Below, in pieces: positions 1,822 to 36,908 of a stretch of DNA of 64,000 nucleotides. Numbering within the stretch: the first letter of the stretch is position 1; each line of letters starts with the position of its first letter. This DNA comes from Octopus sinensis (lineage: Eukaryota): contig NC_042997.1 of the NCBI RefSeq assembly GCF_006345805.1, positions 92,814,001 to 92,878,000 on the forward strand. Direction: 5' to 3'. Position numbers and translations under genes: made by a program. The notes beneath the pieces are model-generated. The model saw nothing but the letters and a program-made list of their open reading frames with translations, did not search any database and was not told the origin of the DNA.

Positions 1822-1874
<53 letters not shown>

Positions 1875-5674: not shown

Positions 5675-5756
5675 CTAATAGATGAAACTCAGAAGAATTA
5701 CTCCTTGCTTAGTGACGGTATTTTGGCAAACAATAACAACAAAAAATTGTACTTAC

Positions 5757-5827
5757 CCTTCCCTGAGAACATGGTATTCAAAATATTCAACAGCTGCCTT
5801 AATACCAATAAATATGTGTTTCATCAG
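5757..5827 (-). CDS. NHE-like exon (LMKHIFIGIKAAVEYFEYHVLRE), juxtamembrane CHP-binding-like helix
   Basis: Long T-rich acceptor (ttttgctgtattttattag), gtaagt donor, 71 nt. Matches NHE1 [23 protein letters not shown]. Confidence 0.82.
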
Positions 5828-8800
5828 CTAATAAAATACAGCAAAAAAAAAAATGCTCACTTTAGAAAAGGATTAGCAAGACTGGGAATAAAACTTCCCT
5901 ACCAATCTCAATCTGTAATTGTCTCTAGTTCCATAACAGTTGAATGTGAAACTTCTATCAAAACATTTTATGTAAAAGAAATAAATTGCATTTCAAACAG
6001 TAGATTTATGTAATGACTTAGAAGTAGAAAACAAGCATCCATTATTTTTAGGAAGAGCCACTGTAACTGAAGGGAGGGAGGGGAGAGAGAGAAATGGAGG
6101 AAAAGATTTGTGGGTTGTTTGGTTAATATCAGCACTTAACGATTTTTATCCCCCAGACATAAAGTATCCTGATAACATTGTCCTTATTTTAAAGATGATA
6201 TAGTGTAATTCGGGGCAGATAAGGGAGCTACTTCTAGCAGGTTGAGCGACCACAATAAAAAAGGAACACATAAGGAGTTATCTTCAGACAGGAATCCTGG
6301 TCCGAAAGGTGGTGTTGTTAAACTGGGTGACATATTAAATGTAATGATCAATAAGAGTGGGCCATCTGCTGAGTTTTATGCTTAGTTTTTGTTTATTCAG
6401 TTTTACTCAAAAGGATATAGTAGAGGACACTTGCCCAGAATTGTGTGATTGCAAAACCAACTTCTTAATAACATAGCTATGCCTGCCAAAAAAACTTTTC
6501 ATATTTGATCCTCCTATCTATCACATTTCAGGTGACTATTATACTAATTATACAATACAGAACTTGATTATTTTGAAAATTCATCTAAATATATGAGTAG
6601 GAAATAAATAAATGATTAGGAAAAGTGATATAAGAATTATATTAAATGGAGATGTTTGTAGCAGCAATATTTGGCAATTTCAAAACTTAGAAATTGAACC
6701 TGGATCACTATATCTGACATAAAAAAGGAACTAAAGAACAAGATTGCGATTAACTAAAATGCTTCCAATGTCATCAGACCATTTGAGACTTCTTGTGGAA
6801 CCGGATATAATAGCAATTTCATCTTTGGTGCCGTCTCTGACCAAGGGCATCACTATGTATTCAGTATATCTTTAGCCATTACAGAGTGGAGAGCAGTTAG
6901 CAAACAGTAGCAGTGAACCAGCAGCAGACCAAAGCGGTATCACAATATAAAAGCAATGGACTGCGGCAGCTGTAACACACCGTAACCAACTAACTTCAAA
7001 AAACTCTCAATGGTGACTAATACCATACCCAACAACATCTCATATAAACATCATTTCTGTGTCATGCATAGTAACAAAAACACTTTTGCTCACAATAAAA
7101 ATATTTTCACATTTAAAATCACAACTAGATTTTTGTGTTCTCTATACTAACATGTTATTTGTTTTCCAGCAGCTTTTTAGGTCAATTTCTGAGCTTTATT
7201 TACTCCATCTTTATGCAGTACTCTACTGCAGAACAGAAACTCAAGCTCAGTTTCAGTTACCAGTTTTAACCCGTGCACATAATTAATTCTATAACTCCAG
7301 TTATATGGCAGCAACAAGTTTTGGTTTACTTAATTTAATACATTCTTCTTTCTACAAAATAATGATAACTAATCTGAGATAAATCTTATAATTAATTCAA
7401 TGTATGTGTGTGCATGTATGTATGTATCAGGAATGTAATATGAACTTTGCATTGTTAATTTGTTTTTATTATTTTTCCACCTGCATGCCTAATTAAATAT
7501 GCTTTTATTAAAGATGCAAGATTTTCAGCTTCAATAAAGGTGTGTATATATATCATCGTCATCGTCTGCTTTCCATGCTGGCATGGGTTGGACAGTTTGA
7601 CTGAGGGCTGGCAAGCCAGAAGGCTGTACCAGATTTCAATCTGTCTTGTTTCTACAGCTGCATGCTCTCCCTAATGCCAACCACTCCGAGAGTGTAGTGG
7701 GTACTTTTGATGTGCTACCGGCACGAGGGCCAGTCAGCTGGCACTGGCATCGACCATGCTCGAATGGTGCTTTCTGTGCCACCAGTACGGGTGCCAATTA
7801 GGCAGTACTGTCATTGGCCACAATTATGACATCACTTGCCTCAACATGTCTTTGCAAGCGCAGTTTATTGCCCAATGATTGAAAGGTACTCTTAAATGGG
7901 ATGGATATTCTGCACTGGCATAGGCCATGGTTACGGTCTCACTTGGCTTGCTGGATTTTCTCAAGCACAGCATATCTCCAAAGGTCTCGGTCACTTGTCA
8001 TTGCCTTGGTGAGGCCCAATGTTTAAAGGTCATGCTTAACCACCTTATCGCAGGTCTTCCTGGGTTTACCTCTTCCACACACTGTCTTGCAAAATGAAAC
8101 ACTTCAAGTCTTTGGTCCTCATGATGCAGAACATTGGCAAATTTTTTCTTATCTGCTTCCCCTCTAGCTATGTAAATGTGAGAAGGAGAATTATTCATAG
8201 GTATTATAGCCCCAGTCAGCTTGGCTGAAATACATAGCACAGACATAACCAACTGACTAAGAGCAAGTTATTAAAATATTTGCATTTTGAAATATTATTA
8301 CACTTTTTTCTTCTATTATTTCTTTTAGCACGAACAATTAGTGATTTTTTAGTAAATCTTAATGTTTTCTACTGTTTACCTCATTCTAGCTGTCATAGTA
8401 TCTAAGCTTATCAAAATAGAAGCTTGAAATAATATTTATAAAGCAACATTTGATTACAGAGTGAGAGAGATACATACATACACAGACATAATCTATATAT
8501 CAAACAGAGCATGGACAATTTTTGTGTCTTTCATGAAATATTATAGTTGCTTTTCCCCAGACACATAAAGACAAACAAAAAATATCAGTAGTTTTTTTCA
8601 GAAATATGCCCACTGACAAAATTATACAATGACTTGCTACATTTCTATTGTTTTACTTTTTATTTTGGTATAAACAGATAGATTTTATATTCGTGTTGCA
8701 TTTTTCTAAGTATTTAACTGAAACAAATTAATTTTTGTAATTCTCTAGGGAAAATGATGCTGACCATATAAACTTTTGTAGGCAGTGATAAAAAAAATAT

Positions 8801-11800
8801 CATTAAAAGGCAAACAAAAGAAACAAAGAGCAGTTTAATAATTTTGAATATTCATTTAATAAAACAAAATAGACATTGGCCACTCAGCTCACTTGTTATA
8901 TTTTGGAAACAACTAATATTTTATGCCAGCAACTCTCAGCAATACTTTGTACTGAATGGCATTTTACAAGTGCCCACTCCTTATCTCCATAGGTTTTGAA
9001 AGGAAAAAAAAATAATCCAGCAGATTATTTTAACTGAGTGGATATTGTTGATGGAAACTGAAAGAATCTCCTTGTATATACGACACGTTAAAAGCACCAT
9101 CCGAACGTGGTAGATGCCAGCGCCGCCTGACTGGCGTCCGTATCAGTGACACGTAAAAGCACCAACCGATCATGGCAGATGCCAGCGCCGCCTGACTGGC
9201 ATCCGTGTCAGTGACACGTAAAAGCACCAACCGATCGTGGCCGTTTGCCAGCCTCCTCTGGGCCCTGTGCTGGTGGCACGTAAAAGGCACCCACTACACT
9301 CACGGAGTGGTTGGCGTTAGGAAGGGCATCCAGCTGTAGAAACACTGCCAGATCAGACTAGAGCCTGGTGCAACCTCCTGGCTTCCCAGACCCCAGTCAA
9401 ACCGTCAAACCCATGCTGGCATGGAAAACGGATGTTAAACGATGATGATGATGTATGTGTGTGTGTGGTGCCTACTGGCAGGTTTGTTCAAACTTTTAGA
9501 AAAATCAGTCAACTAAATGTAGAGATATTGCTGTCAACAGGTAACAGACTGGTTTGCACCTCTGAGGACATGTGAAATAAGCCATCTTATTACTTGATAA
9601 ACAGGCATGGGTTAGCAACAGGAAGGGCAGCCAGCAGTAAAATAATCCCTGAACAATATATCTGTGTCGGTGGCACATAAAATCACCTACTACACTCTCG
9701 GAGTGGTTGGCGTTAGGAAGGGCATCCAGCTGTAGAAACACTGCCAGATCTGACTGGCCTGGTGCAGCCTTTGGGCTTGTCAGACCCCAGTTGAACCGTC
9801 CAACCCATGCTAGCATGGAAAGCGGACGTTAAACGATGATGATATCTAATCCATGTTAGCATGCAAAAATAGATGTAAAATCAAATGGAGAAGGTAATTT
9901 TGTGCAAAGGGTCATTATCCATATTTTCTTCTACTTTCTCATCCAGTGTGTGGCACTTTTTATATATGCCAATATCTAAAACTACACAGGATAGTATATG
10001 AGTATACTAGTGCCACCTATGTTAAATTTTTATGGAAATTACCAAAGAACGTGAAGAGTTATATACAGTACCTTGTCACATTAGCAGTCATGTTCCGTTT
10101 AATGATAACGTAGTATCTTATTTAGATTCTAATACCAACAAAAACATTTTTGAACATATCATACCTAGTTTAAATATTTCTGAGAAAAACCCTAACCCTT
10201 CTAAACACTTAGTGTCCTTTGTGAGCTCACAATTCCCTTCAAGAGACACCTAAGTTATGAACCACTGGTTTACACTAATTAATAATATTGGTTTATTTTG
10301 GCACAAGGCCAGCAAATTTAGGTAAAGGAATAAGTCAAGTAAATTAACCCCAGTATTCAACTGGTACTTATTTTATCAACCCTGAAAAGATGAAAGGCAA
10401 AGTCGACCACAGTGGAATTTGAACTCAGAACATAAAGACAAACAAAATGTTGCAAAGCATTTTGCCCAGCATGCTAACAATTCTGCCAGCTTGCCATTTT
10501 ACCACTAAGTAATATTAGTTTCAAATTTTGATACAAGGCCAGAAGTTTTGCAGGAGGGGCTAAGTCAATTAAAATGACCCCAGCACTCAACTAGTACTTA
10601 TTTTACTGATCCAAAAAGGATAAAACACAAAATCGACCTTGGTGGTTTTTGAACACAGTATGGAAAGATGGATGAAATGTTGCTAAGCATTTCATCTGGG
10701 ATGCTAATGATTCTACCAGCTCACCTTCTTAACATTGAATAATAATATTGATGCCACTTTGAAAATCTTGTAGTTTTTTCTTTGTTGCAAGTCAGTTAAT
10801 TCATCAAGTATGATGAGCAGTAAATAAGAGATTCATTAACAAAAAATTAAATAGTATAATTAAAAATATAAATAAAAATACTATGTACAGTTTCTTCCAC
10901 GGTAGCACCAAATTATTTACAATAAGAGGAGAAATTTTATACAATGCCAACCATACCCCGTCCTGACTGGCTCCTGTGCTGGTAGTACGTGAAAAACACC
11001 ATCTGAACATGGCTGATGCCAGTGCTGCCCGACTGGCTCTCACGTTACTGGCATGTAAAAACACCCTTATGCTCTTGGAGTGGTTGGTGTTAGGAAGGGC
11101 ATCCAGCTGTAGAAACACTGCCAGATCAAATTGGAGCCTGGTGCAGCCTCCTGGCTTGCCTCCCCAGTCAAACCGTCCAGCTCATGCCAGCATGGGAAAC
11201 AGACGTATGATAATGATGCTCCAGCATGTAAAATTTAGATGTTACATGTTCTAGAACAGTATTACACAAGGTGGACCGAGACAATATTTTGGTGAGGCAT
11301 GAGTTACTTCAGAATGATGAATAAGCAAAAAGTGATTAAATCTTGCAGTAAAGTTTTAACTGAAGTTTCTTTGGTATATTTGCATTTGTTATATATACAA
11401 AATCTGTCCATTTATGGTGGGGCACGTTTTCTCTCTTTTTTGTGGGGGTGGGTGGGATAAATTGAAGTGGAGCTTGGGACAAAAGTGGTTGAGAAACTTT
11501 ACATACAGTCTGCTTGATTATTTGAATAGCAATCATAAGGTTGATTTGTGTAAATAGTGTAAATTAGTGTATCAATTTACACTATTACCAAAGTAATAAA
11601 GAATCAGGTTTAATGATAGCTAGAGAATGAGGTTGGCAGAAGAGCAAAGAGAGATGGACATGTTTAATTTCAACAAAAGATATGAATGATATCTGTGAAT
11701 CTGATGCTGTGTTCTGTTATCTGCTTGAAGACAACACGAAAAAATATCCCAAGAGTATGAAACCATGTGAAAAGTAATATTTAGATCTAGTTACTAGACA

Positions 11801-14800
11801 TGATATAATTGGCTTATAAGATTCCTCGGCATTTTCTCAAAGATTTATATTTGAAAAAATGCTTATTGATATCAACTATGTGGAAAACATGGCAAAACTA
11901 ATTAACAAGTTTTCAAGCAGAGATATTTAATAACTATGATGTTATTAACCCAACATTTATGACTAACAATGCAATTTCATCTCATTATTTAGTACAATGA
12001 TTTCATGTCAGCAGATACCACCATACAAACAAGACACTATTTCCTTCTACTTAATATTTCTAAACATTTAATTAAAAACAATAATGGAATCATAAGCAAA
12101 AAACTGGATAGGCATGCATGTGAAATTGTGCACAAGCACATAAGCAAATACCTCAATATTTGAGAATCAAAATTTAGTTGGATATTCACTCACTCATTCA
12201 TTCATTCCATCTAACCAGACACAAACATCAAGATATAAAACAGAATATATACACCACAACTACACTTCTCAGGTACCATTATAGAACATAGGGTTACAAA
12301 ATAAAATAGGAGTCCATAACACCATTTTTTACCAGTTTATATCCCTTATAAAAAAAAAATCTATAAAAATCCTTCAAATACACATGGTACAGTTATCATG
12401 CAACATAATTTTATCAGATCAGAAGGAATGATAACGATATTTCAATGTGTCAGTCAAATAAAGAAAAGCTGTATTACAACACACTAGCCTGTATTAGTTG
12501 TTTAGAAACCAGAGAATGAATTGAGGGTAGAGTAAAAAAAAAAAAGGCTATCATTCAAATCAATACCATTATGTTCTCATTTCATATGAATTTAGTGAAT
12601 GGCCGTACATTTAACTGAGTCAACAACAATGTACTACTACTTCCTATCTTCAAGTAGCAAGCTGAAATGTTCAAATTATTTTTTTTATGTAACACCCAAA
12701 TCCTACACAAATCTTTTTATCATCTCTAGAAGACCCGAATCTTACGCTAGTGTGCTCATAGAGTTGACCACAGCAACTTAACAAGTACAACTAATTTATT
12801 TTGCTGACACAGAGGAGGATGAATATCAAAGTTAATCTCTTTGGAATTTGAAATGAAAGAATTGTTATGGTAAACTAGTTATATAAAGCATCTATACTTT
12901 TGGGTGCAGTTTAGGATGTTTGTAGCAGTAGCACCATCCCAGATATGGCAACAGTACACCATTGTGGGTCTTGTACTTTGTAGAAGATTAGAGTTAAAGT
13001 ATTTCTGGCTCTAGAAAGGAAAGCTAGCCACTAGGATGTAATTTATTTATGGTTATTAACATAGGGGTCATTAGGAAGGAAAAAGAAAATCGAGGTTTGT
13101 GAAGCTTAGCATTTTTAACAACTTTGATCCGTTTCTTAGTAGAGCATCAAAGTGAAATATACATTAATATGTTAGCAAAGACAATTACTTGGTGCAGTTG
13201 ATTTAACTTATCTTCCTGGAAGGATAGGAATAAAAAACAAAAGGAAGTTGATTCAGCAGAATTTGAACTTACAAAGTAGGGATGAAACAAACTAACTCAT
13301 TACACTAGTATTTTCTTCTTTAATCAGAGTTACCTCTTGAAGGAAAAGATGAAAAGTTATATTACTGCTGTTTATTCCATTAAAGTAGAAGTGATGTGAT
13401 GTAAAATCTAGCGTAAAAGAAGCAAGAATGATAAAACTAAACATTATATTGTCACTAACTCAGTAGTCTGTACAAACCTTGTCATTAATAATGGTTTCTT
13501 ACTTAGATATGTCTCATATACTTATGTGTGTGAGTGTGTCAATGTGTAATATCTATAGCTTTCCTAAATGTATAGGAAAATAAGTGAAGTGATTCTTATT
13601 GAGAATAAAAAAAAAAGTTGGCTAATACAGCATTTACCGATAATTGTGGTATATATATATTTTAGTCAAGGTAATGATATATTCCACCAAGGCTCAACAT
13701 ATTTTCATAAATTAGTAGGTATATAATTTACTGAAGTGACCTAGAGAAGATTAAAAGTTTTTTAAAAAAAATCATATTATCAGGAACAGCAAGACTCTGG
13801 GCTAAATAAATATCTTAAAGAATTGGGTTAACTACTAGCACTGATTTATCAACTTAAAACTGATAATAACAATGACATGTCGACAAAAGAGACTCTGTGG
13901 TAGTGCAATCTGCTAAAGACACCGACCATGTTTCCCTTTGTCATATCTTATTGTCATCCAGTATGCACTGTGTTTGAGAGATAAAAACTGGATGATCACA
14001 GCTAAAAGTCCCATACCACAGATCATTGGTGAGTTGACAAACAACATAATAAAGATGATTTATTTTGACTTAAGTACAAGGTCAATTTCTGGGAATGGAT
14101 TACACAGTTTACCAAACTGACAGCAGTATACTGGAGGTTATAAGACATCATGTTTCTTCCATTATGTACATGGCACAGTTGTAGTTGAAGAGTCAATGTA
14201 CAGATTAAGAGACTTTCAATGTACAGATTAAGAGTCTTTCAAATGAGATGAGGATCCAAGACAACCTAGTCAAGATTGAACTCAAACCCATAGAGAAACA
14301 AATCATTTGGTCTAGTAATTTTGGCTAAAGAGGAATAATGAAGCAACAGGGAAAAAGGGAAGTAAAAGGAGAGAAGACAAGGGAAAGAGAAAAGGAAACG
14401 AGAGAGAGAGAGAAAGAGAGAGAGAGGGAAGCAGGGTGAATGAGGAGAGAAAAGACAGAAGAAAGAAGACAGAAAGGGAAAGACAAAAGAAAAGAGTGTA
14501 GTTGTAGTATCAGCAGCAGAAGTAGTAGTAGACACCAGATTAGCAGCAGCAATAGAAGTAGTAGTAGTCACAATATTAGCAGCAGCTGTAGTAGAAGTAG
14601 AGGTAGTCACCATATCAGCAGCAGCAGCAGCAGACAAAGAATATTAGTAAAGGAAATTAGCTCATGTTACTATCAATAGTCAAGTAGGGGAGATGAACTG
14701 TGTATGTAACCAAGTGTTGGGTGGTATTTGTATGTAAAGAGAAATACACTGCTAATATTTAATGAAGAAGTTACACTGACAATTCACTAAAACAGTACAT

Positions 14801-15157
14801 TTGTTCATCATCATCATCAACAAAAACTACTACTACGTATGACACTATATATAATATCTATTGACTAGGCAGGTTGTAACATGCAGGTGCACATGATGTA
14901 GTAGGCGATAAGACATTACTTTCCATCTAGTATGTATTATATACAGAGTACTAGTTCACTGAAGTGAAAAGCTTGATTGACAAGAGCTTGCCTCAGAAGT
15001 TTAGTGCAATCATTAATGTCAATCAAATCCATGACAAAAAGAAGCAAATCAGAGATAGAATTAAAGACAAAGTAAGTTCAAAAAATGTCTGAACCAGGAT
15101 CAAATTCGTAGCTGAAGACTTTGTTGTAAGATAGATGAGTAACCCAACCAAAATGAA

Positions 15158-15191
<34 letters not shown>

Positions 15192-24100: not shown

Positions 24101-27100
24101 TCATCACAATAAGTTTAATTTTATCATTACTGTTTGTCAATGACATAACTAATCAAATTCTGATTGCATACTATTGTCTTTGAAGATGAGTGATACACTG
24201 GATAATATAGTTCTCAATACACAATGCCCAAAAGGACAAGATAGTCCTGGCCGGAATGGCCATTTCCTTGGACTCAGTATCCATTAGTCTCATCTATATA
24301 CTAACTAAAGATGATTGACATTGATGAATGTCTCTGATCAAGTAATTAATTCACTTATGAGTTAATAATATACGAGTTAAAGTAGAAGCCATCAGTAATA
24401 TTGTTAAATAAGGCAACTTTTGAGTACTAGTTAGATGCGATCAGTGTAGTAACTGAATCTCATTCAAGTTTCTTGACAAACTACAAAATAGGAACCATAA
24501 GAGGTTGGATCTGAATTTCAGGACAGAGTGGGCAAGAATACAAACAAAGCAACAGGGATTTAACAAGAACAATAGAAAGAAAGGCTAACAGTAAGCTAGT
24601 ATAAATAATTGTGTGTGGGTATGCAAGGTATATCCTGTATACATTCAGATTGACAATATTGAAAGAGAAAGAGGATGTGTATATTGCATGACTGTAAATG
24701 CAGAAATGGCAGTGGCTATAATCACTCTGATTGAGATCTCTATTTTGAGTAATGTTGTTTATTTGTGTCCGTGTCACTAGAAATAATTTTGAAAGTGGGA
24801 AGAAAATTGTTGCATGTATATTTGAGTGAAAAGCAAGTGGATAGGTACAAGTAGGAAGGTTGTTGCAATATATTTATGCAGAGTAGATGTTTTAGTCATG
24901 TGAGGACCAATGTTGTACGTGACCTTTGTCTGCATGCCTATCCAGAGTGGCAAGATTGATATGGACAATACCCAGCTTGTCTGTTTCCAGACAATTGGTC
25001 CAAACGTTTGCAAGTGAACTTTGCTAAAAGGCGCTTAAAGACTACCAAATAATACAGCTATTTAAAAATAAAACAATTAAAGCAAAATATTGGGAAATAG
25101 TACTAGGCCTTAAGGTCATATCAGAGAGGGAGAAGAAGTAAAACGTTTATACTAGAAAAATTATGCATGTTTTTTTTTCAAAAATAATTTATAAATGCAA
25201 ACTAAACTGCAGCATACTTCAATAAATGCTTTATATGGAAATAAAAGCTGTTAACTTAATTGCACTTCTATTTTTAAATTAGAATCAACAACAGCTTCAT
25301 CAGTTTTGCATTTTTGCCTAAGTTGTATTGATTACATAAGCTCATAATACACAAGTCTCAACCAGGCATCATGTCTTTCTTGAGGTTCCATGTTCTGATA
25401 TTTATCCTAGTTACTGCATTCCACCTAATACTAATTTTCATCTCTCTCTCTCTCTCTCTCTCATCTTAATATGCATCCCTAATCTATTTTTATTATACCC
25501 AAACCAGTGGTTTTGATTTTCAGTAGCTTGTATCTAATCTGTCTCATTCAAGACATTTCTAATAGAAATCATAAGTTATAAATAATCATTGTAGTCATGT
25601 TAGTTGTTTTACAACTATTTTTCTGAGCTACTAATACTGAAATTTTGCTCAGATTGCTTTTGTATAAGTCAACATTTTGCTAGGAGACAATATTAATCTA
25701 AGTGTTCTCCCTATAACTATCTCTTTAAATGTGAAGTGCAGATGCAAGCTAGTATCAACTATTAGGATATTTTTTTCAAGTGAAGTAGAAGTTTTACAAC
25801 TGGATAAGCTTCTTCCTCTCAACTACTAATCACTCAAGTACAAAGTCAAATGATGCAATGCAATAAACAATCCGGAACTAGATAAATTCATCTAAACAGG
25901 GTTATGCTAATTAAAAATAATAACCTAATAATTGCAGCCAATGAAAATGAATTTATAATGTTTTGGTATTATCAAAGGTTCAAAATATATTGTTTTAACC
26001 ATGTCATATTTTATCAACAAAGCAGCTGCCCTACTGATTAATAATCTCAGTTGGAAATTCTACAAGCCTAATATAGGCACAGATATGGCTGTGTGGTAAG
26101 AAGTTTGCATCCCAACCACATGATTCCAGGTTGAGTCCCACTGCATGGAACCTTGGGCAAGTGTCTTCTACTATAGTCCCAGGCTGACCAAAGCCTTGTG
26201 AGTGGATTTGGTAGCTAGAAACTGTGCCACCCACCCAATACCACTTGGTAACCAGTGCTGGTGTGTTTATGTCCCTGTAACTTATTGGTTCAGCAAAAGG
26301 AACTGGTAGCATAAGTACCAGGCTGATAAAAACTAAGTACTGGGGTCGATACATTCAACCCAAAATTCTTCAATGTGGTGCCCCAACATGGCCACAGTCT
26401 AATGACTTAAGCAAGTAAAAGATACAAGATAGCTTGCATTGGAATGAAAACACGGGGTATTTCCTGAATAGCATTGAATCCTTACAAGAAGCTAATGTTC
26501 TATTCATCATCATCATCATCATCATCATCATTTAACGTCCGCTTTCCATGCTAGCATGGGTTGGACGGTTCAACTGGGGTCTGGGGAGCCCGAAGGCTGC
26601 ACCAGGCCAGTCAGATCTGGCAGTGTTTCTACAGCTGGATGCCCTTCCTAACGCCAACCACTCTGAGAGTGTAGTGGGTGATTTTATGTGCCACCGACAC
26701 AGGTGCCAGACGAGGCTGGAGAACGGCCACGCTCGGATGGTGTTTTTTATGTGCCACTGACACAGGTGCCAGACGAGGCTGGCAGACGGCCACGATCGGA
26801 TGGTGTTTGTTACGTGCCCACAGCACGGAGGCCAGTCGATGCAGTACTGGCTACGGCCACATTCGGATGGTTTTCTTGTGTGCCACCGGCACTGGTACCA
26901 CAAAGATACAAATTCCATTGATGTTCATCTATTTTGATTTGTTTTGATTTTCACTTGCCTCAACAGGTCTTCACAAGTGTCACAAGAAGGAAGGTATGCA
27001 CAGGTGGACTGACTACGTCCCAGGTAGGGGCCACGGGTTTACTAAGAATATACTACCCAATATAAAAAAAAATTTTAAAGTGCCTATTTGACTGATACGA

Positions 27101-30100
27101 CTAAAGAACCTTCCAATCTCTTCTCTAGTGTAAAGTTTGACTCACTATTTCATTGTACTATAAAGGCTTCCAATGCTCATACATCACTCTGTACATTCAC
27201 CATTTATTCACTCAAATATCCATAGTACCTTCTTATATTCCAGATTTTATACTAAATATTTTGCCAAATCTTGCCCAGAACAATACTTTTTTTCCAGGAA
27301 CTCTCTGTGCCTATATATTCTTCCAACCACTATATTACTTCAGACTGAATGTTCACACCCAACCATCCAAGCCATCTCAATGAAGAGGTGAGAAGACAGA
27401 AACCTATCGGTACTATCCCTTCATTTATAAACTAAAAATAAAAATAAAAGCAAAATAAAACTTACTAAGCAGATTGAGTAAAAACAAACTAAGAAATAAC
27501 AAACTGTGCATACGTGCAACGTTTTCATATGCGAATGTGTGTGTTCATATGTGAATGTATAAAAATGCAGCTAACATGTTTAGGCTATTGGGATTATAGC
27601 AAATAAAATAATTTTATGAATTGATTTATGGAACAAAATTAAATGCAGATGAAATATAAAAGTAACCTAGTTAGTAAAAAAAATAATCAATACAGAATAT
27701 GACCAATATAAAATTCAGAATGAAAATACAGATAAAAATGAAATATGTATGTCACTGGAAGATGCGTAGGTTTAGAAAATAGTGTTTTATATAGAGTTTT
27801 GAGATCTGGTGATTATATTATTTTATAAATTTTTCTTTCCTTGAAATTTGTTGACAGTACATGAATATATACTAGATAACAAAAAAAAAAAAAAAATTAG
27901 ACAAATTCAATATGAAAAGCTTACTTGAGAAATAAAAATACAAGGTATTTTGATTGCCATGATGGAAAACAACCATTAGAACCTGAACAATGGTCCCAGA
28001 GCAAAAGAGAACAAACTGACAACGTAGCAAATATATATTAGAAATTTTAATGAAATTTACTGATAAGATAATTTATTTTTTGTTTGTAGTGCAGTAGAAC
28101 TGTATGCGATGGGTCAGACCAAAGTGACAAGATAAAATAATCCAAAAGTGATGTCATAGGGTAAAAATTAGAAAGGATGCCAAGTAACTAGATCAATTCA
28201 TTATGTATTACTAATAACAGCTGTTGAATTTTTTCTAAATTTTTAGCTATGAATCTTATCACCTCATTAAAAAAAACAACAAACGTTTCAAACCAACAAG
28301 AAAGCTTCTATGTAATTCATCTGTGCAGCTCAGTATAAAAACAGTCAAATATGCTGTTGTTTAGGCTTAGGCCAGCATTGATCAAAGTCATTCCAGTTAT
28401 GACTATCCTGAGCTTTGAGACTATATTTACCCAGTATATCTAGGACAACATTATCTAAAGTGTCATATTTTCCATTTTGAATGGAAGGAAGTGATCTGAT
28501 GGTAGTTTAGCTATTATTTCTAGCTGCTGAAATTTTCATGTAGATCAACATGTATCTTTGAAGATTTTTAAGAATACTTAAGTAAAATTATGGTCAATTC
28601 TCAGTTATTAGGGCCTATAAATGAACCACTGTCATTGTGAATGGGATACATGAATGACATCTATGCCACAGGTAATTTGTCCTTGAAATTTGTGAAATAT
28701 GTCTCATGAAGGTGATGACAAATGACCAAGTCTTCTGACAATTTGCTGTGCTTGAGAAGACACATCAAGCTAGGTGAAATTGTGATCATGGTCAGTGCCA
28801 GTGAGACATTAAAGGCACCAGTGCCAGTGACAGGTAAAAGGCCCTCATGCCGGTGACATGTAAAAAACACCCAGTACACTCTGTATACCATGCCAGCATA
28901 GAGAACAGATGTTAAATGATGATGATGATGATAAACAATCCTTTTTAACACAGACACAAGACCAGAAATTTGTGAAATAGGAGAGGTGGTAGTCAATTGA
29001 AATCAACCTAGTACCTGACTGGTACTTTATCAAGCTCTGGAAGAATGAAAGACAAAGTCAGCTTTAGCAGGATTTAAAAGTCAGAACATGACATGAAGTG
29101 GCTTAACTAAATACTGCAAGGAACTTTAGCCAAAGTTGTAACAATTCTGTGAATCCACCACAATAAAAATCATCATCATAATTTAACGCCCACTCATCTA
29201 TGCTTGTAAGAGTTAGACAGAATTTGTTGAGGCAGATCTTCTGCAGCTGGATGCTCTTCCGATTGCCAACCCTCACCTGTGTCCAAGCAAGATAATAATT
29301 TCCCCATGGCTAGACATGTTTTTTATGGAAGACTGGAAACGAATACCCTCACTTGTATGACAATGATATCCACTTACAACCATCACACGGTGTCTAAACA
29401 CGGTTACACATAAACAAATGTATATGCATATACATGTATATATATATATATATGTGTGTGTGTGCGTGTATGATGAGCTTCTTTCAGTGTTTGTCTACCA
29501 AATCCATTCACAAGGCTTTAGATGGCCCAAGGTGCTGCACAGTGGGACTGAACACAAGACCACATGGTTGGTTAATTAAAATTCCATATTCATTAAGCTA
29601 TTAACTTATATCACTTTGACACTGGTATGATTTGAGTGCCTTCCATCAACAGTTTAACTATGAATAGAAGGCACTCAAATGATATCAGTATGATGCTATA
29701 AAATGTAACAAGTGATTGCCAAGAAGATATGACTGCATTGTGTTTTCAAAAATAATACTGTGATAAGATAAATAATTGAATTAATCACAAGAACTGCAAC
29801 AGAATATGTTCTACATATCTTCAACTTCGAAACTGCTGTTAACAATAACAAGTGCTGAGTTTGGGATATCAAATCAAATTCCTTATTTATATTTCTTTAG
29901 CAAGTGAATCTGATTCCAAATTATGTGTAGAAACTCAAAGAATTTATCTTTTATCGTTTACTTGTTTCAATCATTTGACTGCTGCCATGCTGGGGTACTG
30001 CCTCGAAGAGTTTTAGTGAAACAAATTGACCCCGGGACATAAACACACCAACACCAGTTGTCAAGTGACGGTGTTAGACAATCACAAAGACACATGCACA

Positions 30101-33100
30101 CATAGATATATACATGCATATATATATATATATATATATATATAAACACATACACACATATATGATGGGTCTTTCAGTTTCTCTCCATCAAATCCACTCA
30201 CAAGGCTTTGGTTGACCCAAGACTATAGTAAAAAGCACTTGCCCAAGGTATCATACAGTAAGACTGAACCCGAAACCATGTGGTTGGGAACCAAGCTTCT
30301 TGCTACATAGTCATGATGTGTCAATAGTATCACAATAGAATTTATATTAGCTATTTAAAACCTATATTGTTATATTCAGTCTTTATTTGCTAAGAAGTTC
30401 TTAATATGATAAGAGGATTGCTTATTTTTTCTGTGCTTCTTAATCTTTCCTTATTCACACCCTCTCACACTTTCCCAAAAGCTAACAATCTCTTTTCAAC
30501 ATATCATATTTTTAATTATTCATAACAACAGAGAAAAGTACCCATGACTTTTGTGAATATTTCAAGACTAATGCAATTGATGCTTAATTTGAACTGCTAT
30601 TAGCTGATGATTACAAGAAGGAATGAAAAAAGGGAGAAAAAAGTAAATGTATGGGAAGGGAATTCTATTGAGCTGCATTTCTGGGGAAGAATGACTGGGC
30701 ATATTGCTTAGTGTAGAATCTAGGGTGAGAAATAGTAGAAATAGCTTGAGGAGGAGAGACAACTGATCTTGATGTAATCTTAGAAAGTCAAACTGTAGAA
30801 GATTAGAGGACACCATAGTGATGTTAGAAGTAGCAGAGTGAAGAAGCTCTTGAGTCAGTGGTTGTAGAGCACTGGTAAGAGAATTGCTGCCTATTAACCA
30901 AATAGACTTCAATGTGGTGATCTAGAATATTTATTTGTGTAGTAGCAGCACCTTCCTAGATATCTAAACAATATTCCAATGTTTGTCTTACTTAAGTACT
31001 GTAGAGCAGTTGAGCAGGATTGAGGTAGTGTTTGCCTCTAAATAAGAATCCCAGTCTTTTGAATGCAGTTTTAGCAATGACATATATTGGAAGCTGCTTA
31101 TAGAGATCATTTGGGACAAAGCCAATAAGCTGATAATGTTAAGCAAATAAAGAGTTTGGAATCTATTCATTTTTATAACAACAATTAGTTGACAACATTA
31201 TTAGTGATAATAATAAACAGCTTTCATGATATGTATGTGAAATCAGTATGAAAAATCATCAGAGGTCATTACCGTTTGGTTACAATAGTTTCAAGTGTAT
31301 GAGAATGTTAAAAGTAAGGACCTGAGAACTAATATCATAACTATGATTTAATATAATTTCATCCACTCTTATAGATTCTGCTTAAAGCCAAGATCATCCC
31401 CCCCACCCCACGGGCATTCAAACACTGCAAAAATGACAATGAAAACACTTATTTACATACTTACCCTAAAATTGCTGGCAGTTGGAACAGTTGCAGACTG
31501 AAATAGATGAGGCAAACCAGAACGGCAATGACTGCAAATTCTAAGAAGTAAATAGTTGACGGTCTGCAGACATTGCCAACAATGGATGCTAAGCAGCTAA
31601 GTAAAAGACCAGTAGCTGTTCCTTCAACTCCAACAGCTAGCAGACACTCAACAATGTTTCCTAAAGAGCTTGGTCTCAGGACTGTGGTGTATGTATTACC
31701 CATGAAATGGTAAAGAATCTGCAAGAAAAAAAAAACATTGTTTACTATTTTAGCTAATCATATTAGAAAATAAAGCAACACTGCTGGCATATTCTTAATT
31801 AAAGATCTTTCAAAGAAAATATATTATTGAGTAAAAGCCACATACCACTTACATACTTCAATATATATAAAAAAAAAAATGAAAACAATTATAGAACAAT
31901 AATGAAATAATAATATATGCTGAAGTAAAGAAAGTAGTATTCACAATACATCAGACAGCTTATAAGAATTTGGTTAAATGAATTCAAATTGTTATATTTG
32001 GGTCACAAATTAAATTTCCATAGTGATTAGCTATACATTACATGATCGCATTAGTCTTAATCTGGTGCTTAAATTCTACAATTACAGGCGGTTTTTTTTT
32101 TAATATATTGATCTTTTTCTAGTTTTAACCTTTTAAATATTCAGGTAAGTCAATAAATTCAAATTTTTATTCTCATATACAATTCAAAATAACATAAATG
32201 GAATCAAATATTACTAAATTGAAAATCAAAGACATTAATTCTACTCCATTATATTCAATTGCTTGTTATGATTCATGTGATGTAAATAAAATTGAACAGA
32301 TCTCATTATTACACTGATGCATTCATCATCATCATCATAATATTTCTAAATGTATTTCTATATTTTATTTTTATAAGGAAATAATTAATAAGGTATAATA
32401 TATATATATAAGTTGTGTAAGAGTGGATGTCTGATGCGCCATGAGTGTAAAGGTCACAGTTACTCATGAAATGCGATTTCAGAAATAAATAATGGCTGAA
32501 CTTAAGAGTTGTCGACATTAATATAATCTGTAGTGCTTCAAAACATTAAAATATATGGTGAGATGGGCTGACCATTTTGAAATTACTGATGTTAAACAAT
32601 TGACATAGGTAAAATAACTGTTATCAACACAATTGCACTTCAGGAATATGTTGCTATGAGGTTAACAGATATCTGTGCGACTGTTTCTCTGTGTACTTAT
32701 ATCCTCTATTTGAGCACTCAGAAAGCATACCTATTAATTTGAGTCATCCTGATGAAAACTCCTCATATCCTCTCTTTCCCTCTCTCTCTATATATATAAA
32801 TACACACACACACACACACACACAAGAAGAGAGAGAGACAGATATACACAGAGAAACAGTCGCACAGATATCTGTTAACCTCATAGCAACATATTCCTAA
32901 AGTGCAATTGTGTTGATAACAGTTATTTACCTATGTCAATAGTTTAACATCAGTAATTTCAAAATGGTCAGCCCATCTCACCATATATTTTAATGTTTTG
33001 AAGCACTACAGATTATATTAATGTCGACAACTCTTAAGTTCAGCCATTATTTATTTCTGAAATCGCATTTCATGAGTAACTGTGACCTTTACACTCATGG

Positions 33101-35174
33101 CGCATCAGACATCCACTCTTCAACCTTACACAACTTTTACAGTTGTAGTCTACTTCCCCATTCCCTCATCTCCTGCTTTCCATACAATCTTGCAAACAAC
33201 CCACTTACCTGCTTCTGTTCACCATGTGCATTGAGGGGCCACTTGGGCAACACATTGCCACTATTTATCTCTTTACAGCCCTACTTACCATTTCTTTCCT
33301 TCTAGCAAATGCGAGTAGCCATACAACACCTCTACAAGAATCTGTTCTAACTGCTAAACCCCAACCCCCATGGCCACCACTACCTACCAGGAATCTGTAG
33401 ACTTGCGAGCTGCATGATGACATGAAAAAAAAAGCACCAAGTACATGCTGTAAAGTAGTTGGCATTAAGAAGGACATCCAACTATAAAAACCATGCCAAA
33501 GCAGACACTGGAGCACAATGCAGTCCTTGGACCTACTCAGACCCTTTCAAACCATCAAGCCCATGCCAGTATGGAACATGTGCATTAAATAATGATAATG
33601 ATGATGACACAGTGACCATGACAATAATTTGAAAGGTAATCAAGAGTTACTTAAGCTGGTGTCAGAGCAGTAGCGTAGCTAATAGGGGAGTAACCATTCC
33701 CCCACCCTTGTGAGCACATTTTTCAAACTGGCACCTTTTCAACAATTTAAAAAAATATTGTATGTCAGTATAATAGTAACACGCTTGTTACGAAAACAAA
33801 GAGCTATGGATTCGAGATCCACACATACAAGAACCCAACTTTTTTCCATCGAGGGCTAATATGCTCCAATATTTAGACTATTTTCTTTAGTCATTGTATG
33901 GTGATTGCTTATAAGCTTTAAGCCTATAAAATATTATTATTATTATTCACAGAATTATAAAAAATTGATGCTGCTTAAGAAAAACCATCACAGAAAGGCA
34001 CAATTTTTGTTAACTCTTTAGTTAACTATATCAGCTGTTTCATATATAATGACATTGTTACTGAATCATGAAATTAATGAATGTTGAATACAATTACATC
34101 TAATATTACTAGTGAAATTTGTTGTAAAAATTGTTTGGTATGTATCACGGTGCCTTTCTTTTATATGTGCTTGCTCTCACTAACATTAGATCCTGGCTAT
34201 ATCTCTGCGTCAGAGTATCAAGTCTACGCTCTGTAGTAAAAAAGTTATTTTGTTCTAACACTTGGATAAATCTAATATTAAATATAACAACATAAAATAA
34301 AATTTCAACTTTTTTTAATGAAAAAGATGAAGCAATACATAGCATTAATAGTTATCAAAAAATGTTGATATAGGTGCAAGAGGGCTATGTGGTAAGAAGT
34401 CTGCTTCCCAACCACATGATTCCAGGTTCAGTCCGACTGTGTGGCACCTTGGGCATGTATCTTCTACTATAGCCTTGGGCTGTCCAAAGCCTTGTGACTG
34501 GATTTGTAGATGGAAACTGAAAGAAGTCCTATGTATGTATGTATGTATGTATGTATGTATGTACGTATGTATGTATGCATGCATGTATTTTTGTATCTGT
34601 CTCCTCACCATTGCTTGACAACCAATATTGATGTTTTTATGTCCCCATAACTTAGCAGTTCAACAAAAGACACTGATAGTATAAATAATAGGCTTCCACA
34701 GAAAAAGTCCTGGGGTTGATTTGTACGACTAAAGGTGATGCTCCAGCATGGCTGCAGTCAAATGACTGAAACAAGTAAATGAATAAAAATATTGCAAGAA
34801 TTCATCATTATCATTTAACATCCACTTTTCCATCTTTACATGGGTTGGATGGAGTTTAGTTGAGGCAGATTTTTCCATGGTTTGATCCCTTTCCTGTTGC
34901 CAACCCTCACCTATTTCCAAGCAAGGCAATATTTCTCCATGGGTAAGTATGTTTACGTAGAATACTGAAAATGAATGACACTGCTTGTATGACAATGACA
35001 GTCATTTGCAACTATCATGCAATGTCAAGACAAGGAGACACACACACACACACATATCTCAACAAGCCGAAACTGTAATGATGATTGGAAATTTGACTGA
35101 TGACTAGAAAGCCACGAATGTTCTGTTGTGGTTTTCCTGTCCATATGTTTTCATTGTTGTCTGTTACGTTCTTT

Positions 35175-35224
<50 letters not shown>

Positions 35225-35860
35225 GATGGGCTTCTTTCAGATTTTGTCAATCAAATCCATTCACAAGGCTTTGGTTGGCCTGGGGATAACATAGAAGGCA
35301 CTTGTGCAAAGTGCCATGCAGTGGGACTGAACCTGGAACCATGTGGTTGGGGAAGCAGACTCTTTACCACCCAGCCATACCTGTGCCTACATATCATATA
35401 CACACATATGCAAGCATACACATGAAATATTGTATTATACTTACCAAGGAAATTGTATCAATTAAGAGGGATTCTCCAAATACAATGAAGTCAGGAATGG
35501 TGTTGAAATGAATATCTTTGAAGGCAGCAAGTAATGGTAAAGGATCGAGTGGAAAAATAAAACAGTTGAGTAGAAAGCAGTACAAGAGTCTGACTTTGCA
35601 ACGTAAAATATGGTAGAGGCCAACAGAAAGTAGTAATATGCAGATCAGTTTGAACAGATGTATGGGCCCTGGCTTAGCTATCAATGGGACCAAAATCAAA
35701 GTCAAGATAGCAAAAATTGCAGCAAAGTCTGGAGCGAGATTTGCAGATGTCAATGAGGGCCAAGAGATGAAGTAAGGCATATAAGAAAGAAGAGTCAGAG
35801 TTGTAATTGCCAAAAACAGAGGGATTACGGTGGATTTCCTCCATTTTAGTGTGTCCAAAT
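5757..35860 (-). CDS. Divergent SLC9A/NHE-type Na+/H+ exchanger-like gene, 6 confident coding exons (5' and 3' ends uncertain)
   Basis: Exons 35860-35445, 31718-31465, 23294-23068, 21283-21081, 20090-20010 and 5827-5757 all have AG/GT ends and compatible phases (0,2,1,0,0). They join into a stop-free ~417-codon frame with NHE motifs in order: DP..L.AF.DIH, VFGESLLID..LILYH, KQYVQAH, CEALV, HCWN, EQFI..LRG, KP, KHIFIGI. Confidence 0.9.
7553..8170 (-). mobile_element. Internally deleted RTE derivative (linker joined to RT C-terminus and 3' UTR)
   Basis: ARGEADKKKFANVLHHEDQRLEVFHFARQ abuts directly on the GKPRKT..DKVVKHDL region and the 3' UTR with gatgacgatgatga tail. Confidence 0.8.
9081..9452 (+). 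mobile_element. RTE 3' UTR copy with three 62-66 bp tandem units
   Basis: g(a/g)cacgt(t)aaaagc unit starts at 9082, 9148, 9213 and 9275, then acactcacggagtggttggcgttaggaagggcatccagctgtagaa...cccatgctggcatggaaaacggatgttaaacgatgatg. Confidence 0.88.
9660..9843 (+). mobile_element. RTE 3' end copy
   Basis: Same 3' UTR core and gatgat tail as 9081. Confidence 0.85.
10291..10727 (-). mobile_element. Two tandem Meta-domain-like SINE copies
   Basis: ggtacttattttatcaaccctgaaaagatgaaaggcaaagtcgacc-like core twice (about 10291-10497 and 10518-10727). Confidence 0.8.
10950..11220 (+). mobile_element. RTE 3' end copy
   Basis: Same core (ggagtggttggtgttaggaagggcatccagctgtagaaacactgcc). Confidence 0.85.
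14355..14640. repeat. GA-rich and (GCA/GTA)n low-complexity tract
   Basis: (GA)n then agcagcagaagtagtagtag-type trinucleotide runs with a duplicated ~40-45 bp block. Confidence 0.85.
15590..15748 (+). mobile_element. tRNA-derived CORE-like SINE head
   Basis: gtggtaagaagcttgcttcccaaccacatggttcgaggatcagtctcactgtatggcaccttgggcaagtgtcttctactatagcc. Confidence 0.85.
15749..17160 (+). mobile_element. 5'-truncated RTE-type LINE (RT C-terminal half plus 3' UTR)
   Basis: QG.VLS.LLFII...KTGCPWELLYVDDL, IRLGWAKFRELLPLL, KGRLYDACVRTAMLHGS, W.GHMMHMDED, GRSRPRKTW. Ends in the gaagggcatccagctgtagaa 3' UTR. Confidence 0.9.
16812..16980 (+). repeat. 42-bp minisatellite (4 units) in RTE 3' region
   Basis: Units start at 16812, 16854, 16896 and 16938 (ttcaagcattgggcctca...aagtggctgagttcc). 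Confidence 0.85.
17700..18350 (-). mobile_element. Degraded RTE LINE fragment (linker region)
   Basis: Minus frames: YQIARRE, EKRFAHIL..DQ..EVFPIARQF, YEKVLKVE, GP. Many disablements. Confidence 0.7.
18383..18690 (+). mobile_element. tRNA-derived SINE (fourth tail type)
   Basis: ggcatatggcttagtggttaagatgttgcactc head. A related minus copy lies at about 21395-21685. Confidence 0.7.
18990..19700 (-). mobile_element. Old mariner transposase fragment, interrupted by a SINE
   Basis: Minus frames give PKQFLELKLHQKKITITVLW, FLNTGKTITA..IDRMYQ..CPALSN, FSKHL and NTFKEFISSETPEF..QKIVEANG, collinear with the mariner C-terminal half. Confidence 0.75.
19185..19375 (-). mobile_element. tRNA-derived SINE inserted in mariner relic
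   Basis: Reverse complement has A/B-box-like head (ttagtggttagggtgttagacacatgatcgtaagatttggtttcggttcctgg) similar to the copies at 47455 and 61030. Confidence 0.65.
20010..20090 (-). CDS. NHE-like exon (SLSFKPMLNSIKRPKSDIISVEKTENH)
   Basis: tttgttgcag acceptor, gtgagt donor, 81 nt, phase 0-0. Positionally matches GMTIRPLVDLL...EEIHTQ. Confidence 0.8.
21081..21283 (-). CDS. NHE-like exon (KLSKFEQFIMFYSILRG...FVTFIL)
   Basis: ttttattttctag-type acceptor, gtaaat donor, 203 nt (phase 1 to 0). Matches NHE1 KLTPKDQFIIAYGGLRG...FFTVFVQ. Confidence 0.9.
21395..21685 (-). mobile_element. tRNA-derived SINE, same family as 18383
   Basis: Shared gatttgtttatagtgatcaaat and gtgccacatgtcag segments. Confidence 0.65.
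21912..22301. repeat. Inverted pair of Penelope-like terminal repeats with hammerhead-like cores
   Basis: Arms about 21912-22097 and 22123-22301. Each has (t/c)cttt-CTGT(A/G)GA-A-gagc-gtag-gctc-GAAAC-at(a/t)-aaaga. Confidence 0.6.
22429..22589. mobile_element. Tc1/mariner-superfamily (Tc2/pogo-like) MITE
   Basis: Perfect 24-bp TIR tattttaacatgtataaggaaccc (22432-22455 and 22563-22586). Subfamily assignment is an inference. Confidence 0.7.
22804..23022 (+). mobile_element. piggyBac-type MITE family A
   Basis: TTAA|ccctttagcatt ... aacactaaaggg|TTAA, intact TTAA on both sides. Confidence 0.88.
23068..23294 (-). CDS. NHE-like exon (VIFCGISIKQYVQAH...HCWN...TSLG)
   Basis: ttttccatttcag acceptor, gtaggt donor, 227 nt (phase 2 to 1). 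Matches NHE1 LIASGVVMRPYVEANIS...SETLIFIFLG...HHWNWTF...RVLG. Confidence 0.9.
24481..25020 (-). mobile_element. Highly degraded CR1/L2-like RT remnant
   Basis: VWTNCLETDKLGIVHINLATLD and QNYF..RTQINN resemble RT domains 3-4. The alignment is weak. Confidence 0.4.
26075..26420 (+). mobile_element. tRNA-derived CORE-like SINE, tail type A
   Basis: Same head as 15590 plus tail ...ccccaacatggccacagtctaatgac...gcaagtaaaagat. Confidence 0.85.
26505..27030 (-). mobile_element. RTE 3' end copy with tandem units
   Basis: Reverse complement of the 9081-type UTR. (CAT)n tail at 26505-26532. Confidence 0.88.
28665..28932 (+). mobile_element. RTE 3' end copy (degraded)
   Basis: gctgtgcttgagaagacacatcaagc and catgccagcatagagaacagatgttaaatgatgatg. 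Confidence 0.7.
28940..29160 (-). mobile_element. Meta-domain-like SINE (degraded)
   Basis: ggtactttatcaagctctggaagaatgaaagacaaagtcagc core. Confidence 0.65.
29175..29570 (-). mobile_element. tRNA-derived SINE with RTE-like tail (type B)
   Basis: Head remnant at 29490-29570, internal TA/TG microsatellite, RTE-type tail. Confidence 0.75.
29960..30312 (-). mobile_element. tRNA-derived CORE-like SINE, tail type A
   Basis: Reverse complement of the 26075/62585 family with internal (TA)n. Confidence 0.85.
31465..31718 (-). CDS. NHE-like exon (ILYHF...LFQLPAILG)
   Basis: ttttcttgcag acceptor, gtaagt donor, 254 nt (phase 0 to 2). Matches NHE1 VLYHLF...AELFHLSGIMA. Confidence 0.9.
32419..33120. 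repeat. Near-perfect 277-bp inverted repeat with 149-bp spacer
   Basis: 32419-32695 is the reverse complement of 32845-33120 with 2 substitutions and 1 single-base indel. Confidence 0.95.
33420..33606 (+). mobile_element. RTE 3' end copy (degraded)
   Basis: ggcattaagaaggacatccaactat...cccatgccagtatgg...gatgatgac. Confidence 0.7.
34370..34790 (+). mobile_element. tRNA-derived CORE-like SINE, tail type A
   Basis: Head, (TATG)n, tail ending gactgaaacaagtaaatgaataaa. Confidence 0.85.
34800..35390 (-). mobile_element. tRNA-derived SINE with RTE-like tail (type B)
   Basis: Head at 35225-35385, (TA)n/(CA)n, RTE-type tail at 34800-35040. Confidence 0.8.
35445..35860 (-). CDS. NHE-like exon (N-terminal TM region to GESLLxD motif)
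   Basis: tttttctcttctag acceptor, gtaagt donor, 416 nt. Encodes ...FPLDPLPLLAAFKDIHFNTIPDFIVFGESLLIDTISL, matching NHE1 [37 protein letters not shown]. Confidence 0.92.

Positions 35861-36859: not shown

Positions 36860-36908
<49 letters not shown>

Follow-up and report, generated by a model that had tools for sequence, protein, structure and literature searches.

The stretch analysed here, called the window throughout, comprises 64,000 nucleotides of the forward strand of Octopus sinensis contig NC_042997.1 (positions 92,814,001 to 92,878,000). On its minus strand it carries the middle part of a gene of the Na+/H+ exchanger (NHE, SLC9A) family with a strongly diverged membrane domain. The window is AT-rich with a GC content of about 34%. 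A human NHE1 sequence was used, solely as a lead, as tblastn query and gave three colinear minus-strand matches with E ~1e-6 (35594-35442, 23308-23036 and 21308-21084). The resulting gene model has six exons, which are given below in the order of transcription together with the adjoining introns. Residue numbers of the exons refer to the protein XP_029641618.1 and TM stands for transmembrane segment.

35861-64000, minus strand: part of the large intron upstream of exon A
35860-35445, minus strand: exon A, 416 nt, residues 120/121-258, phase-1 acceptor, phase-0 donor GTAAGT; encodes roughly TM2-TM6 of the NHE fold
35457-35480, minus strand: codons for FGESLLID within exon A, the TM6 ion-site motif (canonical FGESLLND)
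31718-31465, minus strand: exon B, 254 nt, residues 259-343, phase-0 acceptor, phase-2 donor GTAAGT
23294-23068, minus strand: exon C, 227 nt, residues 344-418, phase-2 acceptor, phase-1 donor GTAGGT; carries the position equivalent to Arg425 of NHE1, here Thr
21283-21081, minus strand: exon D, 203 nt, residues 419-486, phase-1 acceptor, phase-0 donor GTAAAT; motif YSILRGLYTF versus canonical YGGLRGAIAF, Arg458 kept
20090-20010, minus strand: exon E, 81 nt, residues 487-513, phase-0 acceptor, phase-0 donor GTGAGT; codes for the final part of the last TM plus the juxtamembrane linker
5827-5757, minus strand: exon F, 71 nt, residues 514-537, phase-0 acceptor, phase-2 donor GTAAGT; aligns to the juxtamembrane helix 523-544 of NHE1, which we take to be the CHP-binding region
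1-5756, minus strand: part of the intron downstream of exon F

Joined together the six exons amount to 1252 nt, that is, 416 full codons with split codons at both ends and not a single stop. All six acceptors consist of a polypyrimidine tract followed by AG and all six donors start with GT. A first-pass annotation of the window had described just this, six exons with canonical splice sites and about 417 codons without a stop. Stop codons occur once per 16 codons on the minus strand, and runs of at least 139 codons make up only 6 of the 8164 stop-free runs of the window. From the stop frequency the chance of 417 open codons is about 2e-12, a value which ignores the free choice of the exon boundaries; the latter were later fixed independently by homology and annotation. 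Pfam gave no match for the single-exon open reading frames (ORFs), and the spliced model alone is recognisable. Exon A starts at a phase-1 acceptor and exon F stops at a phase-2 donor, so that the gene extends to both sides.

The translation of the six exons is 100% identical, over all 416 residues, to residues 121-536 of XP_029641618.1. This protein is isoform X2 (1202 aa) of the "uncharacterized protein LOC115216422" of Octopus sinensis; isoform X1 has 1234 aa. Thus, the gene is not hidden, as the first-pass annotation had it, but is annotated in RefSeq. The six exons described there are real, yet they are only the middle part (residues 121-537) of a larger gene, about one third of the 1202/1234-aa protein. 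A tblastn search with residues 1-125 found nothing better than E 1.7 in the window, so that the exons for residues 1-120 are absent from it, and when the full protein was mapped back, residues 538-1234 (up to 1202 in isoform X2), which form the cytoplasmic tail, were absent as well. Since the window holds residues 121-537 and the flanking residues lie outside, the whole 64 kb are situated inside the gene. XP_029641618.1 was found by an exhaustive HMMER search over 1.8 billion representatives. Its 90% cluster also contains two models of Octopus vulgaris and the O. bimaculoides locus, and the six-exon join is present in RefSeq as well as in the O. vulgaris annotation. For O. bimaculoides, the RefSeq annotation divides the orthologue between two models, the N-terminal XP_052824292.1 "Na(+)/H(+) exchanger beta" of 534 aa and the C-terminal LOC106876021 "uncharacterized protein". 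The N-terminal model of this species spans 287 kb, and SWEET-like (MtN3_slv) and integrin-beta genes are nested in its introns on the opposite strand. In the literature searched we found no paper naming LOC115216422, LOC106876021 or XP_029641618. The gene model is known (RefSeq, UniProt), and the loss of hallmark residues and the inverted conservation reported below were not found in the literature searched.

The ancestry of the gene is clear. The joined exons match the Pfam family PF00999 (Na_H_Exchanger) with E 1.5e-16 and 60.7 bits at a cutoff of 26.2. At full length the octopus protein scores 55 bits and a canonical scallop NHE 278 bits; the cuttlefish orthologue has no PF00999 match at E<=0.01. 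Ranked by sequence, the best solved structures are NHE1 (2e-30) and NHE3 (5e-27), followed by NHE9 (2e-7) and NHE6 (1e-3), and the alignment to residues 222-544 of human NHE1 is nearly gap-free (E 2e-30). To compare the introns, the exons were mapped exactly in the canonical scallop NHE gene and in a fish beta-NHE gene. Each of the seven junctions of the window part, its two outer limits included, is placed at the homologous residue, with the phases 1, 0, 2, 1, 0, 0 and 2 in octopus, scallop and fish alike, and the cuttlefish genome has the same exon partition as judged from the boundaries of the high-scoring segment pairs. The junctions that the first-pass annotation had matched to vertebrate NHE1 are correct (TV|VL in phase 0, phase 2 after GIM/GIL, G|V in phase 1, Q|G in phase 0), and so is its assignment to the SLC9A-like exchangers, which the PF00999 match and the NHE1 alignment bear out. 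We conclude that the gene descends from a plasma-membrane NHE of the SLC9A1-5 type. A descent from SLC9B, SLC9C or the organellar NHEs was considered and rejected on the sequence ranking and the gene structure.

The vertebrate exchangers SLC9A1/NHE1 and SLC9A3/NHE3 (PDB 7DSV, 7DSX, 7X2U) are thus the best sequence matches with solved structure. They share with the octopus protein Glu262, Ser263, Glu391 and Arg458 (NHE1 numbering) and an alignable juxtamembrane helix, and in the fish beta-NHE the intron positions and phases are identical. The octopus protein, however, is only about 30% identical and its TM2-TM6 exon is 16-18 codons shorter. The tails of vertebrate NHE1 are unrelated to the cephalopod tail, which has no match to the Pfam domain NEXCaM_BD.

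Orthologues of the octopus gene are found in O. vulgaris, O. bimaculoides and the cuttlefish Acanthosepion pharaonis. The last is annotated as "SLC9A3" and is 38% identical to the octopus protein over the window part. Ten independent RNA-seq contigs from cuttlefish carry the complete, intron-free orthologous ORF of 3702 nt; of the runs, at least SRR19578107 and SRR20545809 derive from Sepia esculenta juveniles (PMC9538352). Selection was estimated as the ratio of non-synonymous to synonymous substitution rates (dN/dS, omega) by the Nei-Gojobori method between the S. esculenta mRNA and the A. pharaonis genome. Overall the ratio is 0.16 at a dS of 0.058 (27 non-synonymous and 47 synonymous substitutions, p=4e-14). 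The membrane domain alone gives 0.18 (7 non-synonymous, 12 synonymous, p=2.5e-4) and the tail 0.10. For the octopods the estimate covers exon B, which was compared with genomic contigs of another octopod: 9 of the 11 substitutions are synonymous and 2 are non-synonymous (omega 0.07, p=1e-4). The exon is 95.7% identical between the two, as against 84-86% with many indels in the flanking introns (p=5e-7 for the difference). Between O. sinensis and O. bimaculoides about 11 of the 416 residues differ in the window part. Thus, the gene is under purifying selection and is no pseudogene, and both the membrane domain and the tail are constrained. The supposition of the first-pass annotation that the frame is kept open by selection has held up: the dN/dS estimate which it had proposed is significantly below 1, not near 1, for exon B of octopus as well as for the membrane domain of cuttlefish, and full-length mRNAs are present in S. 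esculenta. One might still think of a decaying pseudogene or an artefact of gene prediction that stays open by chance, as the identity to canonical NHEs is low, the single-exon ORFs lack a Pfam match and the O. bimaculoides annotation gives two models for one locus. We regard this as highly improbable and have rejected it. It is contradicted by 417 open codons where a stop is met every 16 codons, by intact splice sites throughout and seven of seven conserved intron positions, by omega values of 0.07-0.18, by full-length mRNAs in ten RNA-seq runs and by the 19 derived residues (see below) that octopus and cuttlefish hold in common.

The A. pharaonis "SLC9A3" model differs from the S. esculenta mRNAs in two places. 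At residues ~463-488 it has an insert of 25 residues (ASFVFIQIPTYKKLGIGFVRSNLLR) that is absent from these mRNAs and looks like intron retention or a mis-annotation, and the N-terminus differs too.

How far the membrane domain has diverged was analyzed in a MAFFT alignment of the cephalopod proteins with 11 canonical NHEs (human, fish, lamprey, amphioxus, fly, Lingula and five molluscs). Between residues 100 and 544 of NHE1 we count 111 sites that are invariant in the canonical proteins. The octopus protein keeps 42 and the cuttlefish protein 38 of these, only 23 are kept by both, and at 19 of them octopus and cuttlefish have the same derived residue. The membrane domains of octopus and cuttlefish are 34% identical to each other, and octopus and scallop share 28%; the corresponding values are 51% for scallop and human and 68% for scallop and gastropod. 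Compared with scallop the cephalopod membrane domains reach 25-28%, below the ~50-70% that is typical among the members of the long-tail NHE group to be introduced below. Exon by exon the identity to scallop or human is 20-34%, and still lower, 7-26%, for exons E and F. Exon F is at the same time the best conserved window exon between octopus and cuttlefish (54%). In a neighbour-joining tree the two cephalopod branches are as long as the whole rest of the tree, which confirms the fast rate; the placement within a clade is unreliable owing to these long branches. The low identity to canonical motifs and the extreme, fast divergence that had been noted in the first pass are therefore real, as also seen from the 42 of 111 invariant sites and from the 55 versus 278 bits.

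The changes include residues that matter for transport, as is known from mutagenesis of NHE1 and from the structures of NHE1 and NHE9. The altered positions are as follows (NHE1 numbering).

Asn266: Ile in octopus, Ser in cuttlefish
Asp267: Asp in octopus, Asn in cuttlefish
Asp238: Asp in octopus, Asn in cuttlefish
Arg425: Thr in octopus, Thr in cuttlefish
Glu346: Gln in octopus, His in cuttlefish
Ser351: Pro in octopus, Pro in cuttlefish
Gly455-Gly456: Ser-Ile in octopus, Ser-Ala in cuttlefish
Pro168: Leu in octopus, His in cuttlefish

Octopus and cuttlefish alike retain Glu262, Ser263, Glu391, Arg458 and Pro167. The 'ND' motif of TM6 (Asn266-Asp267), which is invariant in the 11 canonical NHEs, is lost and reads Ile-Asp in octopus and Ser-Asn in cuttlefish. 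At the unwound part of TM5 (Asp238-Pro239) octopus keeps LDP and cuttlefish has Asn-Thr. A pair of intramembrane arginines is found in neither lineage, for Arg458 is kept and Arg425 is Thr in both. The segment LPPI(I/V)xDAGY (NHE1 166-175) has no recognisable counterpart in the alignment, where octopus LILVPLIA followed by a gap is placed against it, and exon A, which is flanked by the same two conserved introns as the homologous exons of scallop and fish, falls 16-18 codons short of them. Octopus and cuttlefish have motifs of TM6, TM7 and TM12 in common. Hydropathy gives a set of hydrophobic segments comparable to that of an NHE. When structures were compared with Foldseek, the top matches were NHE1 (E 3e-7) and NHE3 (1e-5), then NHE9 and SLC9C, with TM-scores of just 0.33-0.34; SLC9C appears solely at E>0.05. 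A fold with 13 TMs as in the NHEs is plausible from these predictions.

The codon equivalent to Asn266 is variable among the S. esculenta contigs. At nucleotide 761 of the coding sequence nine contigs read AGC (Ser) and one, from SRR5319792, reads AAC (Asn), so that this contig has Asn-Asn at the 'ND' motif. Ser also stands here in the protein model of A. pharaonis, whose genome thus presumably encodes it. The A/G difference could be a single nucleotide polymorphism or adenosine-to-inosine (A-to-I) editing (Asn to Ser). The cuttlefish Asn codons at the Asp238 and Asp267 positions are AAC and AAT, and editing of the first A would yield Asp.

The cytoplasmic tail, which lies outside the window, behaves differently from the membrane domain. 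It is 58-59% identical between octopus and cuttlefish and thus better conserved than the membrane domain with its 34%, whereas in NHEs it is usually the other way round. Homologous tails are found in NHEs of bivalves, gastropods, Lingula and a nemertean (BLASTP E 1e-25 to 1e-6 in all, 1e-25 to 1e-11 for molluscs and Lingula), and the tail matches fly and crab NHEs more weakly (E ~1e-4). These long-tail NHEs include scallop XP_021372404.1, Gigantopelta XP_041375066.1, Biomphalaria XP_055892057.1 and the "sodium/hydrogen exchanger 3" of Lingula and Drosophila. They have in common with the cephalopod protein the tail motifs LPWKR, (F)PSW..N..Y and GSPY.SP (consensus), and the scallop gene has the same seven intron positions as the octopus gene. 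Long-tail NHEs end in an acidic stretch followed by S/T-x-hydrophobic, which is ETIV in octopus and SSHL, DTHL, DTRL, ETYV or ESII elsewhere; by its sequence this C-terminus conforms to a class-I PDZ-binding motif. The difference is in the membrane domain, which is canonical in the invertebrate long-tail NHEs (278 bits), whereas the cephalopod proteins are 25-28% identical to it and score 55 bits or not at all.

Is the gene then the cephalopod orthologue of the long-tail NHE or an additional copy? Protein searches with the scallop member and with the octopus tail scored 8000 word-sharing candidates each. The best 120 matches of the scallop member come from bivalves, gastropods, a brachiopod, nemerteans, an annelid, amphioxus and arthropods, with no cephalopod among them, and the octopus tail returned the cuttlefish orthologue alone. 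Because of the tail homology, and because no canonical cephalopod member of the same clade was found, the gene appears to be a fast-evolved cephalopod orthologue of the invertebrate long-tail NHE rather than an extra duplicate, although at this number of candidates the searches are suggestive only. The first-pass annotation had spoken of a lineage-specific paralogue. It was right in that the divergent form was found in cephalopods (octopus and cuttlefish) only; the same two observations favour an orthologue over a paralogue. A cephalopod-specific duplicate which was released from constraint, with no orthology to the pan-invertebrate gene, is possible, and we consider it the weaker of the two explanations of the origin. 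The long branches make the tree placement uninformative, and cephalopods do have at least one other canonical NHE, the gill 'NHE3' of squid and octopus, which has been assigned, as a canonical exchanger, to the 'invertebrate NHE3 clade' and whose epitope reads IYRVRKVGYDEQFIMSY (Hu et al. 2017, PMC5357659). This SLC9A member of the same animals is not the gene studied here, as the window gene reads TRDTTIKLSKFEQFIMFY at the place of the epitope. Against such a duplicate stands the tail, whose homology is specifically with the long-tail clade of scallop, gastropod, Lingula and fly and which shares the PDZ-ligand end, and the outcome of both searches points in the same direction, if only suggestively. 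A protein from an RNA-seq run that resembles canonical cephalopod NHE3 was not used.

What could such a protein do? Conserved are the exon architecture of the NHEs, three buried charges (Glu262, Glu391 and Arg458), motifs of TM6, TM7 and TM12, the juxtamembrane helix, and a long tail that ends in the PDZ ligand. The residues of the cation/proton site are not conserved in the orthogroup and other invariant residues are gone in both lineages, so that the shared function is probably not canonical exchange. For this point taken alone we see somewhat better than even odds. As explanation of the whole we favour, with a probability of roughly 0.6, a constrained and expressed cephalopod descendant of the long-tail NHEs for which canonical exchange is probably not the conserved function. 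We suggest that a membrane-embedded module of the NHE fold with altered or no transport chemistry would present the conserved regulatory or scaffolding tail with its PDZ-binding end at the membrane, either as a 'pseudo-exchanger' or as a re-specified transporter. Omega well below 1, the 19 shared derived residues and the retention of three buried charges argue against a mere membrane anchor. Taken together the sequences would fit a re-specified transporter or a sensing or regulatory module of the NHE fold that positions the PDZ-binding tail.

Several points weigh against this explanation. The proposed loss of exchange is deduced solely from sequence and from mutagenesis and structure work on NHE1. 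Where the deletion in exon A is placed hinges on the MAFFT alignment of a poorly alignable stretch. The AlphaFold2 model (43 sequences) is of low confidence, with a mean pLDDT (per-residue confidence) of 52.9 and a pTM (predicted TM-score) of 0.46, so that fold and site geometry are unreadable from it. For the octopus itself the support consists of concordant gene models in three species and of transcript contigs that cover the tail only, and transcription is shown in cuttlefish. In addition, three buried charges kept in a fast-evolving domain argue for some ion-related function and not for a passive anchor. Finally, the octopus protein keeps Asp238, Glu262, Ser263, Asp267, Glu391 and Arg458, and judging from these residues an active, if unusual, octopus exchanger is quite possible.

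This last point leads to the chief competing explanation, in which the protein is still a working cation/proton exchanger with an unusual site and possibly with altered ion preference or kinetics (e.g. for K+ or NH4+). The divergence would then be adaptation and not loss of transport. Besides the six residues just named and Pro167, the purifying selection on the membrane domain and the motifs common to octopus and cuttlefish in TM6, TM7 and TM12 are in its favour, as is the one S. esculenta transcript with Asn at the Asn266-equivalent site. It is, however, difficult to reconcile with the Asn found in cuttlefish at both Asp238 and Asp267, with the changes of Arg425, Glu346, Ser351 and Gly455-Gly456 in both lineages, and with an LPPIxxDAGY segment that is unrecognisable and whose exon is 16-18 codons shorter. 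Furthermore, the tail is conserved above the membrane domain, which is the reverse of canonical NHEs. In our view a working exchanger is hence rather unlikely. To return to the module without canonical exchange, one could go a step further and suppose an ancient exchanger turned 'pseudo-exchanger', which no longer carries out canonical exchange and is kept for a new function of the membrane domain (sensing, gating or a new substrate) along with the PDZ-binding tail. We put this forward tentatively, at somewhat less than even odds. Since 19 derived changes at otherwise invariant sites are shared, the remodelling would have begun before the split of octopus and cuttlefish, and it would have gone on in both lineages. 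It is more speculative that A-to-I RNA editing tunes the codons of the ion site in cuttlefish, an idea which comes from the AAC/AAT Asn codons at both Asp positions and from the A/G difference at the Asn266 codon.

Transporter-derived proteins that do not transport are known as transceptors or pseudo-transporters, for instance Snf3 and Rgt2 of yeast. The likeness would be in a transporter fold that is under selection, in changed residues of the substrate site and in a long tail with conserved motifs. This resemblance is an analogy only.

The introns of the gene are rich in repeats. Between exons A and B there is a near-perfect inverted repeat with arms of ~277 nt that are 99% complementary and enclose ~149 nt of a mixed CT/AT/CA/GA microsatellite. 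Possible origins are a foldback or MITE-like element (miniature inverted-repeat transposable element), a recent inverted duplication or an assembly artefact. Two interspersed repeat families were found as well; the copies of family 1 are 60-96% identical and occur in both orientations in the introns, and from the donor of exon A it is ~95 nt downstream to one copy of family 2. A further pair of copies, each 98 nt long and 73% identical to each other, carries a tRNA-like head (GGCTTAGTGGTTAAG...GATTCCC), in keeping with tRNA-derived short interspersed nuclear elements; scans of the window with ARAGORN and Rfam called nothing. Two decayed copies of a retrotransposon without long terminal repeats (non-LTR), 88-89% identical, run antisense to the NHE gene. 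A fragment of reverse transcriptase that includes a YGDDL/YVDDL motif is present in one of them (RVT_1, E 1e-6, 28.7 bits, just below the cutoff), a PHD-like zinc finger in the other (E 2e-6). Several long spurious ORFs arise from microsatellites and from a low-complexity, Ser/Thr/Leu-rich stretch in which both strands are open. The coordinates are:

32419-32695 and 32845-33120: arms of the inverted repeat
7647-7773, 9070-9411, 9660-9843, 10972-11184, 26521-26702, 52229-52509 and 60287-60501: repeat family 1
15590-15742, 26072-26224, 34368-34520, 30148-30287, 35211-35350 and 55202-55341: repeat family 2
18384-18481 and 47458-47555: 98-nt copies with tRNA-like head
15765-16470 and 59870-60344, plus strand: decayed non-LTR retrotransposon copies
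19736-19874, 30067-30179, 36831-36939 and 14266-14680: (TA)n/(CA)n microsatellites and the low-complexity stretch

In summary, the membrane domains of the NHEs are among the most conserved parts of animal ion-transport proteins, yet in this cephalopod orthogroup octopus and cuttlefish (34%) are more diverged from each other than scallop is from human (51%), and residues that are invariant from fly to human are lost, while the domain and the tail are both under purifying selection. Depending on the species, the orthologues are labelled "uncharacterized protein", "Na(+)/H(+) exchanger beta" or "SLC9A3", and none of these labels should be taken as evidence of an exchanger function in work on the acid-base or ammonia physiology of cephalopods. 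If the protein indeed does not carry out Na+/H+ exchange, it would be a case from nature in which a secondary transporter fold has been put to another use, and structure-function studies of the NHEs would gain natural variants at the ND motif, Arg425 and Glu346.

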